From sequence record OR532817.1: a stretch of DNA of 64,000 bases. One strand, given 5' to 3'. Made by a program: the position numbers and the translations under genes. The notes beneath the pieces were generated by a model that ran no database searches, was not told where the DNA came from, and saw only the letters and a list, made by a program, of their open reading frames with translations. Positions 4,164 to 64,000 of this stretch are shown here, one piece after another; the stretch's first letter is position 1; every line of letters begins with the position of its first letter.

Positions 4164-4634
4164 GTGGATTTTTTTCTATTTGAGATTAAATTAAACATGC
4201 ACAATGAAGAAATAATTCATTTTCTTAAATTTTATTTAAAATGTATCAATGCTGTTCAAAAATTAATGGAATGTGAAATGATTAATGATTTTAATGATCA
4301 TTTTGGATATATAAGTACAGATTTATATCCCGTCCCTGTTCGTGTAAAATGGAATTATGATCAAGATGCATATGCAATGCAACTGGATTTTGATTTATTC
4401 GGACTTCCATCTAAATTTAATATAGGAACTATTTGTTTTGATAAAAATGATGGTTTGATTTTAATTTGTTATAACAATAAAACAGAAGTTGATTTAAAAT
4501 ACAGAGAATGGTTAACCGAAGAATCGTTTTTTCAGTCCTCGTTAATATATGATTTTGGTAGTACTGATTTACAGTACTGGAATAAATGCATTGATTTATT
4601 TGAAAAGATTGAAGGAGTAATGACAGGTGTTTAA
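4164..4634 (+). CDS. hypothetical protein, FQxS-motif family
   Basis: EESFFQSSLIYD followed by STDLQYWNKCI, shared with 14754..15263. Confidence 0.7.
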   Translation: MDFFLFEIKLNMHNEEIIHFLKFYLKCINAVQKLMECEMINDFNDHFGYISTDLYPVPVRVKWNYDQDAYAMQLDFDLFGLPSKFNIGTICFDKNDGLILICYNNKTEVDLKYREWLTEESFFQSSLIYDFGSTDLQYWNKCIDLFEKIEGVMTGV

Positions 4635-6063: not shown

Positions 6064-9990
<3,927 letters not shown>

Positions 9991-13493: not shown

Positions 13494-13581
13494 GGCCGTA
13501 TGTCCAAATTGGTAAAGGAGACAGACTTAAAATCTGTTGGTGATATTCACCTTCTCGATTCGAGTTCGAGTGCGGCTACCA
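13494..13581 (+). tRNA. tRNA-Leu(UAA)
   Basis: Cloverleaf with long variable arm, ACAGA-CTTAAAA-TCTGT, TTCGAG T-loop, encoded CCA. Confidence 0.92.
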
Positions 13582-13610
13582 AATTTATAGTACTTCATTA
13601 GGTAAACAAT

Positions 13611-13934
13611 ATGTGTACTGAAGCAAGAAGATATGTTTATATTTTGGTTCGCAAAGATTTAGAACTAAAGGATATTATTGTTCAAACTGCTCATGCTTCA
13701 TATGAAAGTGCAAAAGAATTTAAAAATAATGCTGATAGAACATCTATTATAGTTTTAGAAGTCAAGGACTTATACAAACTAAATGATGCTAAAAGTTATT
13801 TAAATTCTAATGGCATTAATTGGACTGTGTATACTGAAAAATCTTTAGGATTTGGAGAAACTGCTATCAGTACTGAAGCACTCAATAACGAACAACGCAA
13901 AACTATGCGTAAGTTCCAATTATTGAAAATATAA
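13611..13934 (+). CDS. second PTH2-superfamily protein
   Basis: YILVRKDL..IIVQTAHASYE, IIVLEV, G.GETAIST, C-terminal FQLL. Confidence 0.7.
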   Translation: MCTEARRYVYILVRKDLELKDIIVQTAHASYESAKEFKNNADRTSIIVLEVKDLYKLNDAKSYLNSNGINWTVYTEKSLGFGETAISTEALNNEQRKTMRKFQLLKI

Positions 13935-13947
13935 ATATAATAACAAA

Positions 13948-14023
<76 letters not shown>

Positions 14024-14028
14024 AATTC

Positions 14029-14124
14029 AACAGGTAGTAACGCTCTTAGGTGTACATTAATATAGGAATAAGGGTTAACAGTACTGTACACAAACGAGTA
14101 ACCCCGAAAGACCCGAAACCTGTT
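14029..14124 (+). ncRNA. candidate pseudoknotted ncRNA
   Basis: AACAGG/CCTGTT closing stem, GTGTACA/TGTACAC stem, loop GGGTTA complementary to downstream TAACCC. Confidence 0.5.
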
Positions 14125-14134
14125 AAAGTTTTAC

Positions 14135-14184
14135 GGATGATTATAAATCTGAATTGACAGAAACAGCTAAAACTGTTATTATCC
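14135..14184 (+). ncRNA. 50-nt D-armless tRNA-like RNA, copy 1
   Basis: GGATGAT/ATTATCC; TCTG-AATTGA-CAGA; AACAG-CTAAAA-CTGTT. Confidence 0.7.
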
Positions 14185-14192
14185 TATTTTAT

Positions 14193-14377
14193 TCCACAAT
14201 CAGACGTATATGGTGTAAGTTACGTCGATGAAATCCAGAACAAGATCTCTGGTACTCTAGGAAGTGGTGAATGTTAACCTAGACGGGTTTGTTAATTGGA
14301 CGATAAGCAATTAATACTTGACTAGCAGGTTTAAACTAGAGGTGACTGTCCTTCACTAAACTGGAAAACCGGGTGGA
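14193..14377 (+). ncRNA. candidate ~185-nt multibranch ncRNA
   Basis: TCCAC/GTGGA closes six hairpins (GACGTA/TACGTC, CCAGA/TCTGG, CTAGG/CCTAG, TTAATTG/CAATTAA, CTAG/CTAG, GTGA/TCAC). Confidence 0.55.
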
Positions 14378-14395
14378 CTTTTAATTAAAAAAGTG

Positions 14396-14424
14396 TTGAA
14401 CAAAATGTTCAATAATGATATAAT
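14396..14424 (+). promoter_or_regulatory. repeated tRNA-island promoter with TTGAAC-N5-GTTCAA palindrome
   Basis: TTGAAC-17-TATAAT with TG extension; related copies at 15341, 15766, 15972, 16179. Confidence 0.7.
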
Positions 14425-14515
14425 AAGTATCAATGTAAGGCGTGGAACAATGTTTACAGAAGTTACTTAGTAGCCTGTACGCCCCACGTCAAGGTAGCCG
14501 AAAGGCAAGTTTAAT

Positions 14516-14565
14516 GGGTGGTTATAAATCTGAATTGACAGAGACTATTAAAACAGTCACCATCC
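14516..14565 (+). ncRNA. 50-nt D-armless tRNA-like RNA, copy 2
   Basis: GGGTGGT/ACCATCC; TCTG-AATTGA-CAGA; GACT-ATTAAAAC-AGTC. Confidence 0.7.
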
Positions 14566-14753
14566 AAATTTTAATTTAATAGTTTAGTATGAATAAAAAA
14601 CAAATACATAAACATTATGATGAAATTGCAGTGAAGGTTTTTCGTGGTGAATTAGGTTATAAACCATCTGTTAAATCTAAATATTCAAAATCTTCTTCAA
14701 TAAAGTTCAATCATAAAATAGAGTTTAAATAATACTGGACAATAATATATAAA

Positions 14754-15263
14754 ATGAATATCACTAATGTAAAAGATTTTTTAGAATATTTTATTAAGAA
14801 TACTCGTGCCCGTGATGAATTAGAAAAAAATGGATTCGTTGATGGTTACGATTGCACTAATTTCTTTTATACTATTGATAAACATGAATATTATGTCGAT
14901 GCAACTTTAAGTGATGATCCATATTATATAAAAGATGGGTATTGCATTGGATTTACGTTCGAAGATAAATCACTAGATGCACCAATAAACTTTTATACAT
15001 TATATTATAATAAAAAAGATAATATTTTGAAATTAGGATTTACTTGGGATGATGAAGAAGATGTTGTATTCAATTGTAATACATGGTTAGAACATGATTC
15101 ATTCTTTCAAAGTACATTAATTCATGACTTTATGACAACAGATTTAGAGTACTGGAAAAACTGCATAGAATTACTTAATGTAATTTATAATGAACAAGTT
15201 AAAAAATTTGACAATAGTTTACACAATGATGACATTTATAATAAAAACTTTATGGGACGATAA
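14754..15263 (+). CDS. hypothetical protein, FQxS-motif family
   Basis: HDSFFQSTLIHD..TTDLEYWKNCI. Confidence 0.7.
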   Translation: MNITNVKDFLEYFIKNTRARDELEKNGFVDGYDCTNFFYTIDKHEYYVDATLSDDPYYIKDGYCIGFTFEDKSLDAPINFYTLYYNKKDNILKLGFTWDDEEDVVFNCNTWLEHDSFFQSTLIHDFMTTDLEYWKNCIELLNVIYNEQVKKFDNSLHNDDIYNKNFMGR

Positions 15264-15371
15264 TCGTAGGACGGGTCAGCATTTGGTAGTATGTTCGGCT
15301 GAATAAAGTATAAACGTCATCACCAAATTTAAAAAAAGTGTTGAACAAAATCATCAATACTGATATAATAA

Positions 15372-15608
15372 ATGAAATTTTTTTTAAGGTCATATGATAT
15401 GTTGACAGATACTAATAAAAAGATGTTTATTCAAATAGGTTTTTTTACTCTTCAAGATATCATTGATAAGGCACATGAAAAATGGCCTAATGTAAAACTT
15501 GAAGATATTCATATTGAAATAGAATGTATAGAAGAAAATAATACTTCATATCATGGTCTGAAAAACGTAAAAGTTTGCACTGAATATTACGTATTAAGTA
15601 TTGAATAA
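15372..15608 (+). CDS. hypothetical protein
   Basis: ORF directly after promoter at 15341..15369. Confidence 0.55.
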   Translation: MKFFLRSYDMLTDTNKKMFIQIGFFTLQDIIDKAHEKWPNVKLEDIHIEIECIEENNTSYHGLKNVKVCTEYYVLSIE

Positions 15609-15635
15609 TTCAGTACTGTATAATTGACTTACTAC

Positions 15636-15709
15636 GTCCCCTTAGTTCAGTTGGATAGAACAACTGCCTTCTAAGCAGTAGGTCACTGGTTCGAGTCCAG
15701 TAGGGGATA
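15636..15709 (+). tRNA. tRNA-Arg(UCU)
   Basis: Cloverleaf, CTGC-CTTCTAA-GCAG, TTCGAG T-loop; ACCA lies 2 nt downstream rather than directly after the discriminator. Confidence 0.9.
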
Positions 15710-15858
15710 TACCATACAATATGGGAATAGTTAGAAGATATTCCCAATTTTAATTTAAAAAAGTGTTGAACAAAAAGTTCAATAATGATATAATGGTATT
15801 ATAAAAGGTTGTAATACTTAATATTAACTTTTAAGAAGATAATTAGTTATCATACACA

Positions 15859-15950
<92 letters not shown>

Positions 15951-16008
15951 TAAAATTCAATTAAAAAAGTGTTGAACAAAAAGTTCAATGCTGATATAAT
16001 AAAAGAAT

Positions 16009-16099
<91 letters not shown>

Positions 16100-16107
16100 G
16101 ATTTTAT

Positions 16108-16157
16108 GGATAGTTATAAAGTTGAATTAACAGCGACACTTAAAATTGTCACTATCC
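16108..16157 (+). ncRNA. 50-nt D-armless tRNA-like RNA, copy 3
   Basis: GGATAGT/ACTATCC; GTTG-AATTAA-CAGC; GACA-CTTAAAAT-TGTC. Confidence 0.7.
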
Positions 16158-16217
16158 AAATTTTAATTTAAATAGTACTTGACAAAAATGTTCAGTACTG
16201 ATACAATAAAGAATATT

Positions 16218-16528
16218 GGCCCCTTAGCTCACGCTTTGGTTAGAGCAGACGACTCATCGATAAATGGTGACTTTCACAAGTAATTGTGATTGAAAAACTG
16301 GATGAATTCAGGGAAACCTTAACACATAATGGTGATGGCAATCCTGAGCCAAGCCCAATAAGCGTATTGGGAAGGTGCAGAGACTAGGTGGTTCAGCACG
16401 ATCTTGCTGTGTAATACACCAATAGCGTCCGGCATCCTTATAGGATGATGATATAGTCCTTTCTATAATGAAAATTATAGGTAAAAAGAATCGTTTGGTA
16501 CTGTGTTCGACTCACAGAGGGGCCACCA
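16218..16528 (+). tRNA. tRNA-Ile2(CAU), intron-containing (exons 16218..16257 and 16489..16528)
   Basis: Joined exons give GGCCCCTTAGCTC...GACGA-CTCATAA-TCGTT...AGGGGCCACCA, closely resembling E. coli ileX. Confidence 0.9.
16258..16488 (+). mobile_element. group I intron (IC3-like), 231 nt, no ORF
   Basis: Core AATTCAGGGAAAC, AATCCTGAGCCAA, GTGCAGAGACT, GATATAGTCC; 5' exon ends in U, intron ends in G; GUGA can pair with exon UCAU giving the U.G splice-site wobble. Confidence 0.92.
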
Positions 16529-16532
16529 CACA

Positions 16533-16606
16533 TTGTACTCTTCTCCCGTAAGGAGAATGACAAAAAGCTATCCGAAAGATAGAAAGCCTGAATTAACAGG
16601 GTGCAA
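16533..16606 (+). ncRNA. candidate 74-nt four-way-junction RNA
   Basis: TTGTAC/GTGCAA closing; TTCTCC/GGAGAA, CTATC/GATAG and CCTG-AATTAA-CAGG hairpins. Confidence 0.55.
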
Positions 16607-16618
16607 TTAAAATACATT

Positions 16619-16693
16619 GGTTCGTTGGCCTATTGGTCGGCCAGCAAACTGTTAATTTGCCTCAAACTAGTTCAATTCTAGTACGAACCGCCA
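16619..16693 (+). tRNA. tRNA-Asn(GUU)
   Basis: GGTTCGT/ACGAACC, GCAAA-CTGTTAA-TTTGC, encoded CCA. Confidence 0.9.
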
Positions 16694-60922: not shown

Positions 60923-61456
60923 ATGATCATCCAAATCAATAGCTATAAAACAAAAGAAGAACTGACCACCCTTATTATTAAAGCTATTCAAAAAGGGGAA
61001 AGTTATATCAAAATTCCATTAGATAAAACAAGCAATCGTAATATGGTTATTTCCCAAATTGATAAAGATTTTGATATCAATATATGCTATATGGAAGAAA
61101 CCAGTACAGATATCATCTACTCAGGTACTGAATCATTTAATCCAGACCAAATCGTTACAGCAGCGGATAATTGCGTCCAACGTTATTTCAGTACTGAACC
61201 AAATAAAACAATCAGAGAACAACAAAAAGTAGAAAAACATAGCAAAAACTTCCCCGGTGGTATGACCGTTAAAGAACTAAAAGAATTAATTAAAGATTGG
61301 CCTGAAACCAATCAGTACGGAGAAGATACTTTAGTATATATCAGTACTGAATCAGATACGGATTGTACTGTACATTCTTCGTGGTGTTCATCAGTAAGAA
61401 CTAATGATAATGGTACACTTGTGTATGACTTGACTCTTGATACAGAACAAAGATAA
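60923..61456 (+). CDS. hypothetical protein
   Basis: 177 aa; followed by terminator-like ACTCCCCGTA/TACGGGGAGT. Confidence 0.65.
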   Translation: MIIQINSYKTKEELTTLIIKAIQKGESYIKIPLDKTSNRNMVISQIDKDFDINICYMEETSTDIIYSGTESFNPDQIVTAADNCVQRYFSTEPNKTIREQQKVEKHSKNFPGGMTVKELKELIKDWPETNQYGEDTLVYISTESDTDCTVHSSWCSSVRTNDNGTLVYDLTLDTEQR

Positions 61457-61959
61457 TTAAAAAGACTCCCCGTAAAACTCGATCAAACGGATTCTACGGG
61501 GAGTATACTATATTGGACGATATGGTCATTATAGTAGACAATTTAATGGATATAGGTGATTCAGTACTGATAATAATGAATATAAATGAATAAGAATAGT
61601 ATAGTACTAATAATAATGAATAGGAATTGATAAGAATGATTCAGTACTATTAAGAATGATTAAGTACTATTCAGTACTATTCAGTACTGATATGCCACTA
61701 AGTCCGTTTATAAAGTCGCACCCAGTGGGCTACATTTGTAACTATTCAGTACTTAATAATTCAACTCATCAATTATTACAAACCTAACTATTTCAAATCT
61801 AATTACCCCATTAACTAAATCCCCAAATTATATATTAGCAAAAATCCCAGTACTAAATCAAGAAAAATCTGGATTGTCGATGAGAAAAAATCTGGATTTT
61901 AAAAATTTTGAAATGTCGTTCATAGTTCAGGAAAAAAATGAAATCATAACAAGAAAAGT

Positions 61960-61990
61960 GTTGACACGGACATACTGCCATTATATAATG
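61960..61990 (+). promoter_or_regulatory. sigma70-like promoter upstream of ~500 bp of non-coding DNA
   Basis: GTGTTGACA...TATAAT; no ORF downstream. Confidence 0.6.
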
Positions 61991-63228
61991 TAATCCTCAA
62001 GACGAGAGAATGTTCTCTCATAGAAATGCGAAGAAGCCGAGTTTATCTGTCCCTGCGTGAGTGGGCTAACATTTGAATAGGACAATACGTAGATGAATGA
62101 AAAAGGTTTAAAGGGAAGTATTTGATTCCCTGTAGTATAGTTAATGAGTTAGTACTGATTTAGATGTAATCATTGAGTAGTACTACTGTCGCAAAGGGAA
62201 ACCTTTGGCTTCCATGGGGAGTGATGACAGAAGGGCATTATCCTCCATATAGAGTTACTGCTAATAACTCCGTAAGTTGGGTTGTGGCAAACCTCCTAAA
62301 ATAAGTAATAACAGTACTACTGCTTGATGGATTTGTTACCCGTAGGTAGTACTGATTTTAATTTAAAGAATACCCTCCGCCAAGAAAGGTGCATGTAACT
62401 TGAACATGTGAACTACGGGAACAGTACTGAACCATTCAGTACTGATTCCTCTCCAAATTTTGGATACAATAATGCTAGGCTTCAGTTAGTACTGAGTGAG
62501 AATGATAATGATTCTCATTTGAATTGGATGAGAACGATTCTCATTTACTATTGCAAATGATAATAGATTGCATTTACGAATGGTTCTCATTCGCAGATGA
62601 TAATGATTCTTATTCAAAATTGATTTTTCCGATTTTTTCCATTAGTCCCCCTTCAGCGTAGGGTTAATTTTTCCCCTGCCGAATCGGTTTTATATTTTCA
62701 AAATCTGGATTAATCATATCAGTACTAACCCAGATAAACAATACCCCTTTACAAATCTTTACAAAAAGATTCTAAATGCGAATACAAATGATAATGATTC
62801 TCATTTACAGTACTGAATACTTTTCCCCACGCTCTGGCGTCTCCGGTTCCTCCCGTCTATATAAACATTATACAGTACTGAAATATTAAGTCAATACTAT
62901 TTTTTCAAAAAGATTAAAATAAAATACTTGCAATCCTGATATTATTATATTATAATGTTTACAGTACTGAGAAAGTGCTTTTGCCCGCTAGGGTGCGGGG
63001 GAGTATGCGTTAAATGAGAATGATAATCATTTACAGTACTGGACGGATTTTCCCACCCTCGGGGGTCTCTTTTTGTCTATGTGGTAATTATACAGTACTG
63101 GAATACTATATCAAGTCTCTTTACAAATCTTTACAATCCACCCGGGGAGATTTATCTTTACAATAAAAGTACTTGCATAATTCTTTCAGTACTGCTATTA
63201 TATATTCATACCAAACAGGAGAACTACC

Positions 63229-63399
63229 ATGAAATACGCGTACTCTTATTTTATTGTAAACGGTGAACGTTTGACCATCGGCCAGGCAGCGGTAAAGCAT
63301 GAAATCATTTGCGATGATCTGGCAAAGATGCTACCAGGTGAAACGCAAGAGTTTTACAAGGGCTTTCAGAAAGTCACTGTAACACGTTGTGAAGATTGA
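63229..63399 (+). CDS. 56-aa early hypothetical protein (not in ORF track)
   Basis: Own promoter, AGGAG RBS, MKYAYSYF...RCED. Confidence 0.6.
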   Translation: MKYAYSYFIVNGERLTIGQAAVKHEIICDDLAKMLPGETQEFYKGFQKVTVTRCED

Positions 63400-63464
63400 T
63401 CCAGTATTAGGGGTAGGAATACCCCTAAAACGTCCTGTAACGCATTATAAGAGGTTTTTATAAT

Positions 63465-63692
63465 ATGGCTATAGAAGTTAACGCTGGGGATATAAAGGCG
63501 GCTGTACTGCGTACCCTGAAAGCATACGGCAGAAAGCTGAATGATCGCAACGTTCCCTATTATTTCCTTGCTGCTACTCATAAAATGGCAATCGCTGAGG
63601 CTCGCGGGTGGCTGAATGATCGCAGTACTGTAAAGAGTACCAGAACAAGAAACGCAATTGAGCGATGGATAAAAGAATTAAATCATTTCTAA
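63465..63692 (+). CDS. 75-aa hypothetical protein
   Basis: GAGG RBS, higher-GC coding sequence. Confidence 0.6.
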   Translation: MAIEVNAGDIKAAVLRTLKAYGRKLNDRNVPYYFLAATHKMAIAEARGWLNDRSTVKSTRTRNAIERWIKELNHF

Positions 63693-64000
63693 TAGTTCAG
63701 TTATGGAATCAGTACTGATTCCCTGTTTAGTACTGAAATTATAAGGGGAGTTAATTAATTCCCCTTTACAAATCTTTACAAAAGAATGGTTGACATAGTA
63801 TCCCAGTACTGGTATTATGTATTCATAGACAGAACAAGTCTTTGGCCCACCGGGTGCGGAGGAGTATCTATTAGATTGAATGATAATGATAATGATTCTC
63901 ATTTACTGTACTGAATATATTTCCGCACCCTTTTGGGCTTTTCGATTACTTTCTACTTGTTAATAAGTATACCATAATCAGTACTGAATGCAATGGTCTT

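Follow-up and report, generated by a model that had tools for sequence, protein, structure and literature searches.

A dense array of Fur-type operators in the predicted terminal-repeat leader of the lytic Klebsiella jumbo phage RCIP0023

Fur-type sites near the predicted end of the phage genome

The DNA analyzed here, a 64,000-nucleotide (nt) stretch of sequence record OR532817.1 (hereafter the window), is 100% identical by sequence comparison to Klebsiella phage RCIP0023, a jumbo phage of ~350 kb in the genus Alcyoneusvirus, and 93–95% identical to the related phages RaK2, K64-1, and Muenster. Close to the right end of the window, a non-coding stretch separates the last upstream open reading frame (ORF; end at 61456) from the first small ORF (63229), and within and beyond it lies an array of sites resembling operators of the host metal sensor Fur. 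The position of this array relative to the genome terminus was derived by homology. The Muenster record opens at what PhageTerm predicts to be a direct terminal repeat of 20,030 bp, the start of which aligns at query position 202, i.e., window position ~61701. The left physical end of a ~20-kb direct terminal repeat is thus predicted at 61690–61710 in RCIP0023, which would place the Fur array 0.8–2.2 kb inside the left end of the virion DNA.

A preliminary description of this stretch, made from the letters alone, had proposed an array of about seven Fur-box-like sites, and the array proved real. The 19-mer on which that proposal was based has seven matches with ≤3 mismatches in the window, all at 62504–63906, where 0.19 would be expected by chance; the E. 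coli Fur 19-mer consensus has six, all at 62498–63906, against 0.11 expected; and the identities of 15/19 and 16/19 to the Fur consensus given earlier are correct. A better register is offered by a 21-bp palindromic frame common to the sites, AAATGAnAATnATTnTCATTT, which includes a 13/14 match to the 7-1-7 Fur motif. A Fur matrix was learned de novo from E. coli K-12 with a Gibbs sampler set to palindromic motifs, applied to eight intergenic regions under Fur control (fepA-fes, fepD-entS, fepB-entC, fhuA, fecI, fecA, ryhB, and cirA). The sampler converged on AAATGATAATAATTATCATTT, and in all five held-out K-12 loci (42 kb) the top match fell within the known Fur-regulated region. These held-out operators (fur, tonB, exbB, fiu, and fhuF) scored 9.5–23.7 bits and the training sites 22–26 bits, for an overall range of 9.5–26 bits across the E. 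coli operators tested; the maximum possible with this matrix is 32.

Scored in this way, positions 62494–63904 hold nine primary Fur-type sites and four partners shifted by 6 bp. The four sites reaching at least 26 bits (range 26–30), designated by their start positions, are 62786 (30.0 bits), 63884 (29.8), 62500 (28.4), and 63012 (26.3), where Markov-2 simulations predict 0.003 such sites per 64 kb, and the strongest outscore every E. coli operator tested. Weaker sites start at 63878 (21.5 bits), 62555 (20.7), 62595 (20.3), 62526 (17.6), and 62572 (15.1), so that 9 of the 24 matches of ≥15 bits in the window fall in the 1.4 kb of the array. The dense cluster described earlier at 62498–62615 stands, but with five sites rather than four. 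The extra hexamers remarked upon there correspond to overlapping partners at 62494, 62780, 63018, and 63878, which form four pairs offset by 6 bp (62494/62500, 62780/62786, 63012/63018, and 63878/63884). This is the multi-dimer arrangement of Fur operators, and the same 6-bp spacing is seen in natural Fur clusters (Chen et al., PMC2189734). The next 24 kb of the repeat contain a single further site, located inside a coding region.

Several lines of evidence strongly support the identification of these sites as Fur boxes. The array displays the Fur recognition sequence, both as the 19-bp consensus and as the 7-1-7 inverted repeat, and the match is stronger than identities of 15–16/19 had implied. 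The exact 19-mer also occurs in 91 stretches of bacterial genomes, mostly of beta- and gammaproteobacteria, and among ten sampled genes just 3′ of these bacterial copies, three encode TonB-dependent receptors and one TonB. No Fur homologue was found in Alcyoneusvirus, T5-like, or Phapecoctavirus genomes when E. coli Fur was compared by tblastn to 50,697 phage records; hence the binding protein would most simply be the host's own. Since the sites are near consensus and Fur biochemistry is well established, Fe-Fur very probably occupies them in iron-replete cells. As had been noted, no iron-related gene was detected near the array, with neither the ORF annotations nor a Pfam scan of neighboring ORFs revealing an iron-related domain, and no association of the array with iron-acquisition or iron-sparing genes is seen.

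The sites are also conserved beyond their surroundings. Most are kept in Muenster, RaK2, K64-1, KP13-7, and OU509535, with a few substituted; KP13-7 lacks two, including the one at 62786, for which the 21-mer is identical in the other four genomes. Across six genomes, box columns are 97.2% identical compared to 89.8% for the rest of the leader, and 87% of box columns are fully conserved compared to 69% elsewhere (Fisher p = 1e-6), while columns 62450–62600, covering most of the five-site cluster, are 99% conserved.

Architecture of the array region

Promoters in this region were called as matches to the sigma-70 consensus. The first one after the predicted terminus, from which it stands 260 bp away, is a perfect match (TTGACA/17 nt/TATAAT, 12/12; 61961–61989, + strand) and would drive ~0.5 kb without an ORF. 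This conserved untranslated leader (61996–62490, +) includes no credible ORF and has no Rfam match, and its portion at 62000–62300 is 95–100% identical among six Alcyoneusvirus genomes. The segment 61961–62490 may represent an abundant early non-coding RNA. Immediately downstream, cluster I (62494–62615) groups the primary sites 62500, 62526, 62555, 62572, and 62595 with the partner 62494 (12.9 bits), and is followed by a T-rich tail, without arms or a hairpin. It is succeeded by the 62786–62806 site and its overlapping partner (62780–62806), into which a promoter-like element fires leftward (TTGACT/16 nt/TATAAT, 11/12; 62867–62894, − strand). A candidate + strand promoter upstream of this site was rejected by eye, as its spacing was wrong.

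The remaining sites are embedded in two hairpin units. In unit B (62983–63075, +; fold z = −1.8), G+C-rich arms surround the Fur site 63012–63032 and its partner 63018, and the unit ends in a T-run terminator (63050–63075, +). The 63012 site is flanked by a plus-strand promoter firing rightward into the unit (TTGCAA/17 nt/TATAAT, 10/12; 62928–62956) and by a promoter-like element on the minus strand firing leftward into it (TTGATA/16 nt/TATAAT, 11/12; 63114 to 63087). Beyond the first two early ORFs, both of them small (56 and 75 aa; 63229–63692, +), which have no Pfam match and no iron-related domain, another promoter (TTGACA/17 nt/TATTAT with TG, 11/12; 63790–63818, +) fires into unit C (63844–63939, +), a long imperfect palindrome with the overlapping sites 63878/63884 at its apex and a U-rich tail (minimum free energy −40.2 kcal/mol, z = −4.5). 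In B as in C, the box thus stands at the apex of an extended imperfect palindrome, whose arms are rich in G+C and which ends in a U-rich tail, and across three units the Fur site lies ~55–70 bp downstream of the predicted transcription start. Features of a small RNA or terminator, namely a promoter, a conserved covarying hairpin, and a U-tract, are present in units B and C and not in cluster I. Scans for tRNAs and Rfam families in the array region returned nothing relevant.

A similar layout is found in the Erwinia jumbo phage Hallingskeid, which has almost no alignable DNA here and yet carries six sites of 18–25 bits, an equivalent of the perfect-consensus promoter 61961–61989, and units ordered, as in RCIP0023, as promoter, arm, Fur box, arm, and converging promoter. 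One Hallingskeid box lies between a promoter and a start codon, and its hairpin units fold at z = −5.6 and −6.3. When 11 such units are aligned, compensatory changes are seen at 5 of the 24 consensus pairs, and G-U pairing occurs on the + strand; the pairs within the box are 11/11 identical. With stems that covary around an invariant box, both the RNA hairpin and the box are under constraint, and the hairpin does not explain the box. A search of viral contigs for the gapped arm-plus-box pattern yielded 82 stretches, almost all due to chance, and among these only RaK2 and contig L225 had a box between G+C-rich arms.

Several other elements accompany the array. A direct repeat, TTTACAAATCTTTAC (TTTAC-N5-TTTAC), is present in four copies in the array region, mostly just 5′ of early promoters: at 62748–62762 (+), at 63120–63134 (+; 5′ of the promoter of the first ORF), at 63765–63779 (+; centered ~50 bp 5′ of the next transcription start), and, at the very end of the window, at L002:4000-4014 (window 63999–64013). 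Three copies in the window compare with 0.5 expected, and six in the 28-kb repeat region with 0.27, and the same element adjoins the Phapecoctavirus Fur array described below (L161:3212-3226). It fits what we take to be the CpxR-box form, GTAAA-N5-GTAAA, an assignment we regard as a lead only. An 8-bp palindrome, CAGTACTG, occurs 61 times across the window (0.47 expected), most densely at 61500–64000. It is built into early promoters as AGTACTTGAC ... CAGTACTG-TATAAT, directly follows three Fur sites, and is abundant in Hallingskeid. A short element, AAATCTGGA, at 61865–61873, 61888–61896, and 62701–62709 (6 in the window, 1.05 expected), also appears near the Fur arrays of a Phapecoctavirus-like contig and of Hallingskeid (L024:3300-3320; L162:3448-3456, 4174-4182). 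Tandem units of 20–40 bp (AGTACT plus ATAATAATGAATA-like) at 61540–61700, just ahead of the predicted terminus, could be a terminase recognition mark.

Regarding coding capacity, a 50-aa ORF at 63014–63166, annotated as RaK2 ORF323 and Muenster gp001, begins inside a Fur box and spans the hairpin, the terminator, and the minus-strand promoter, and is probably not a gene. Small "hypothetical" ORFs annotated over the boxes in these genomes would then overlie control DNA. The terminal repeat also encodes, past the window end, an early protein of 166 aa (L002:7554-8054) that has an H-NS N-terminal (oligomerization) domain and may act as an H-NS antagonist. At a distance from the array, a group I intron (104 bits; 16232–16480) lies within a cluster of six tRNA genes (13494–16693).

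Comparable arrays in unrelated phages and in the T5 injection-stop region

To place the array in a broader context, we examined viral loci picked by motif search, so that the resulting statistics show where sites lie, not how common they are. The exact 19-mer is present in 37 IMG/VR stretches and a degenerate palindrome in >120, and at least 148 viral loci grouped into 70 sequence clusters, with a locus G+C content of 31–58%. Among the loci listed, three or more primary sites fall within 400 bp in at least 14 clusters, and two or more in at least 34. ORFs of ≥100 aa make up 67% of the DNA, yet 93% of strong sites lie outside them. Viral matches are overrepresented toward contig ends (14/33, p = 0.003). 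Within 400 bp of strong sites among the loci listed, the enrichment is 7-fold for DnaA boxes and 13-fold for LexA-like palindromes, many of these loci being interrelated. In uncultured T7-like contigs, the non-coding DNA that separates the terminase gene from the first early genes has consensus DnaA boxes interspersed among seven to eight Fur boxes (L018:1245-1310; L022 ~6700). No gene function shared by the DNA beside arrays was seen in the few contigs checked, where the flanking genes encode the GP88 family twice and otherwise NADAR, an HNH endonuclease, and terminase. Other examples include a Phapecoctavirus array of three sites of 26–30 bits between converging genes and three sites in the final 400 bp of the record of the Autographiviridae phage CRP-143. 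Non-coding DNA at the terminus or in the leader carries comparable arrays in unrelated phages such as CRP-143 and T5.

In T5 (AY587007), Fur sites at 9472, 9576, and 9611 score 23.3, 30.0, and 24.3 bits, span 9472–9637, and correspond to the palindromes annotated as E, G, and I and to direct repeats C. The 7.9% nick (9661–9668) is just to their right, and the calculated first-step shear point, 9618, is located among them. An annotated "palindrome D" (AY587007 9330–9349; L160:3531-3550), which looks like a near-perfect LexA box, adjoins the DnaA boxes of the injection-stop region. Davison has proposed Repeat Region 3 of the left T5 terminal repeat, described by its DnaA boxes, as the injection stop signal (10.1101/866236), and the T5 Fur sites fall inside this region, beside these boxes. 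The T5 stop takes place without new protein synthesis and is not seen in proteoliposomes (10.1101/866236), which fits a pre-existing cytoplasmic host factor. Fur is not named for the T5 palindromes in that study, in a 2026 PNAS discussion, or in the searchable literature.

Interpretation and comparison with known systems

The identity of these sites with Fur operators, their clustering, conservation, and placement, and their recurrence in other phages are best explained if the array consists of genuine consensus-strength operators for host Fur, located on DNA that probably enters the cell first. As for occupancy and output, we infer, with a probability of roughly 0.45, that host Fur assembles on this leading DNA, where it acts in cis either on early transcription or on entry itself, depending on the iron state of the host. 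In an iron-replete host, Fe-Fur dimers would load onto the ~13 overlapping, phased sites once the leader DNA is inside, and would form a multi-dimer nucleoprotein block acting in cis. Since the block would sit where early host-polymerase promoters converge and at the apices of terminator hairpins, it would clamp or insulate the short units transcribed early, and might also hold the leading DNA. Under iron starvation these units would be left open by apo-Fur, such that the earliest program of the phage would read the host iron state, and any late titration of Fur would be a physical by-product rather than a selected function. Action in cis is favored here because the sites are restricted to the leader, because they are associated with converging promoters and terminator hairpins, and because they recur in terminal or leader DNA of unrelated phages. 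Two ideas of the preliminary description, a coupling to iron status and a coating of incoming DNA, are close to this interpretation and remain viable. Another role in cis may be that of a barrier against H-NS silencing of this 32% G+C DNA; the H-NS-domain protein is also encoded in the repeat.

A number of observations weigh against such a cis-acting block. Classical Fur operators overlap a −35 or −10 element, whereas none of the sites does so in our consensus-based promoter scan, the sites lying either ~55–70 bp downstream of a predicted start or >500 bp away from a promoter. The compensatory changes and + strand G-U pairs in the hairpins around three sites indicate that selection at the RNA level is also present, and this could be the main selection on the hairpin units. 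Moreover, the terminus is predicted from a relative, the identity of the leading end of the DNA is an assumption, and so is the ability of Fur to halt an elongating polymerase at these positions, where no regulated target gene can be named.

The third idea of the preliminary description, that replicating genomes serve as a sponge titrating host Fur, fits this context least well of its three proposals, and we consider it unlikely. Such titration would derepress the iron-uptake regulon and RyhB and supply iron for phage enzymes such as ribonucleotide reductase. It is consistent with the number of sites (~13 dimer sites per repeat copy), the strongest of which exceed host operators, with the doubling of site dose per virion genome by the repeat, and with the lack of an evident target gene in cis; at an assumed Fur abundance, site numbers would come near Fur dimer numbers once genome copies reach some hundreds. 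Nothing would tie a sponge to one location, yet the sites are found solely in the repeat leader, between early promoters, and similar arrays in unrelated phages are in terminal or leader DNA as well. Many phage lineages carry only one to three sites, too few for early titration. Most lytic phages also curtail host transcription, and T5-like phages degrade host DNA in the first minutes of infection, so that a sponge cannot explain the T5 arrays. Titration in trans is thus physically possible late in infection, and the Fur titration assay relies on the same principle (PMC2189734), but it fits the placement and the T5 parallel less well than action in cis. A checkpoint on DNA entry or end processing, at which the Fur-bound array would pause or anchor DNA transfer or mark the repeat boundary for terminase until early proteins act, draws on precisely this parallel: the T5 sites are palindromes inside the proposed stop signal, whose behavior fits a pre-existing host factor, while the RCIP0023 array lies close to the predicted end and viral matches concentrate near contig ends. 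We nevertheless hold it to be rather improbable, as two-step injection is not known in Alcyoneusvirus, the array starts the 20-kb repeat instead of marking its inner boundary as in T5, neither DnaA nor LexA boxes accompany it (no DnaA-type box at 61400–64000 and no LexA box beside the array), and a protein bound to DNA already inside the cell is hard to see stopping further entry. We also know of no report of T5 failing on fur mutants, which counts against this checkpoint as well.

Two further alternatives dispense with Fur. The sites might be bound by a phage-encoded non-Fur protein or by another host protein, their likeness to Fur boxes being convergent or incidental, a possibility raised in the preliminary description itself and compatible with the many early proteins without known function in this region and with the frequent recognition of A+T-rich palindromes by phage regulators. 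It has little probability in our view: the match to an E. coli-derived matrix is near its maximum (30 of 32 bits), the few loci checked revealed no gene common to these phages, and at least 14 phage clusters unrelated to one another (G+C 32–54%) share the 21-bp frame with bacterial iron-uptake promoters, which suggests a conserved host protein. Alternatively, the 63012 and 63884 sites could be RNA elements only, i.e., apical parts of small-RNA or terminator hairpins in which the palindrome is kept for RNA structure. The upstream promoters and downstream U-rich tails, the folding of + strand units into long hairpins both here (z = −4.5) and in Hallingskeid, and the covarying pairs are all as this would predict. 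However, cluster I, with five sites, has neither arms nor a hairpin, the 62786 site lacks an upstream arm, no Rfam family matches, T5, Phapecoctavirus, and CRP-143 have this box with no hairpin, and an invariant box within covarying stems is the opposite of what structure-only selection would leave, all of which makes this the most improbable of the explanations considered.

If host Fur does load on these arrays, strictly lytic phages would read or exploit a host metal sensor via their own non-coding DNA, a layer of phage–host coupling undescribed in the searchable literature. This would bear on Klebsiella phage infection under the iron limitation typical of infected tissue, and would be relevant to phage therapy. 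In the searchable literature we found no report of Fur-box arrays in lytic phages, and both a dense consensus-strength Fur array in a lytic-phage terminal-repeat leader without an iron gene and a Fur array in the T5 stop region appear unreported. Fur would also be a concrete candidate host factor for a 60-year-old puzzle, namely what halts T5 DNA after 8% entry. A broader generalization seems doubtful: that Fur arrays, together with the DnaA and LexA boxes of T5-like and other phages, form a general host-state checkpoint, composed of operators for host sensor-regulators, on the DNA that a virulent phage delivers first, with the T5 stop being partly a Fur plug and the jumbo phage gating its early program by iron.

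Host-regulator operators in phage genomes are as such already known, including LexA boxes in temperate phages and PhoB and NtcA sites in cyanophages. The Stx1 prophage has a Fur-controlled promoter (cited in PMC2189734). All of these resemble the present array in placing the operator of a host sensor-regulator in the control DNA of the phage, but they are usually single, with one promoter and a specific gene, whereas strictly lytic RCIP0023 carries a dense array without an evident target. A natural array of Fur decoy sites is not known to us. Many high-affinity Fur sites on a high-copy replicon are likewise a feature of the multicopy plasmids with Fur boxes used in the Fur titration assay; these are a laboratory artefact, however, and while the number and strength of the phage sites are those of a decoy, their placement among promoters argues for action in cis. 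Chromosomal Fur operators of Enterobacteria (fepB-entC, fhuF, ryhB, fecI, fhuA, and cirA) share with the array the 21-bp palindromic frame, the 6-bp overlaps, and the clustering of sites (PMC2189734), but the strongest phage sites are nearer consensus than any host site tested, and the phage sites lie off promoter hexamers, away from iron genes, and at a density of nine primary sites in 1.4 kb. The closest parallel is with T5. The T5 region has DnaA boxes paired within inverted repeats, together with a LexA-like palindrome and nine DRD repeats, none of which accompanies the RCIP0023 array, and the T5 array sits at the inner end of a 10-kb repeat instead of the outer end of a 20-kb one. Both phages are virulent and make early use of the host polymerase, and in both an untranslated, highly conserved, repeat-rich segment of a long direct terminal repeat carries an array of strong Fur sites (23–30 bits in T5) followed by a hairpin.

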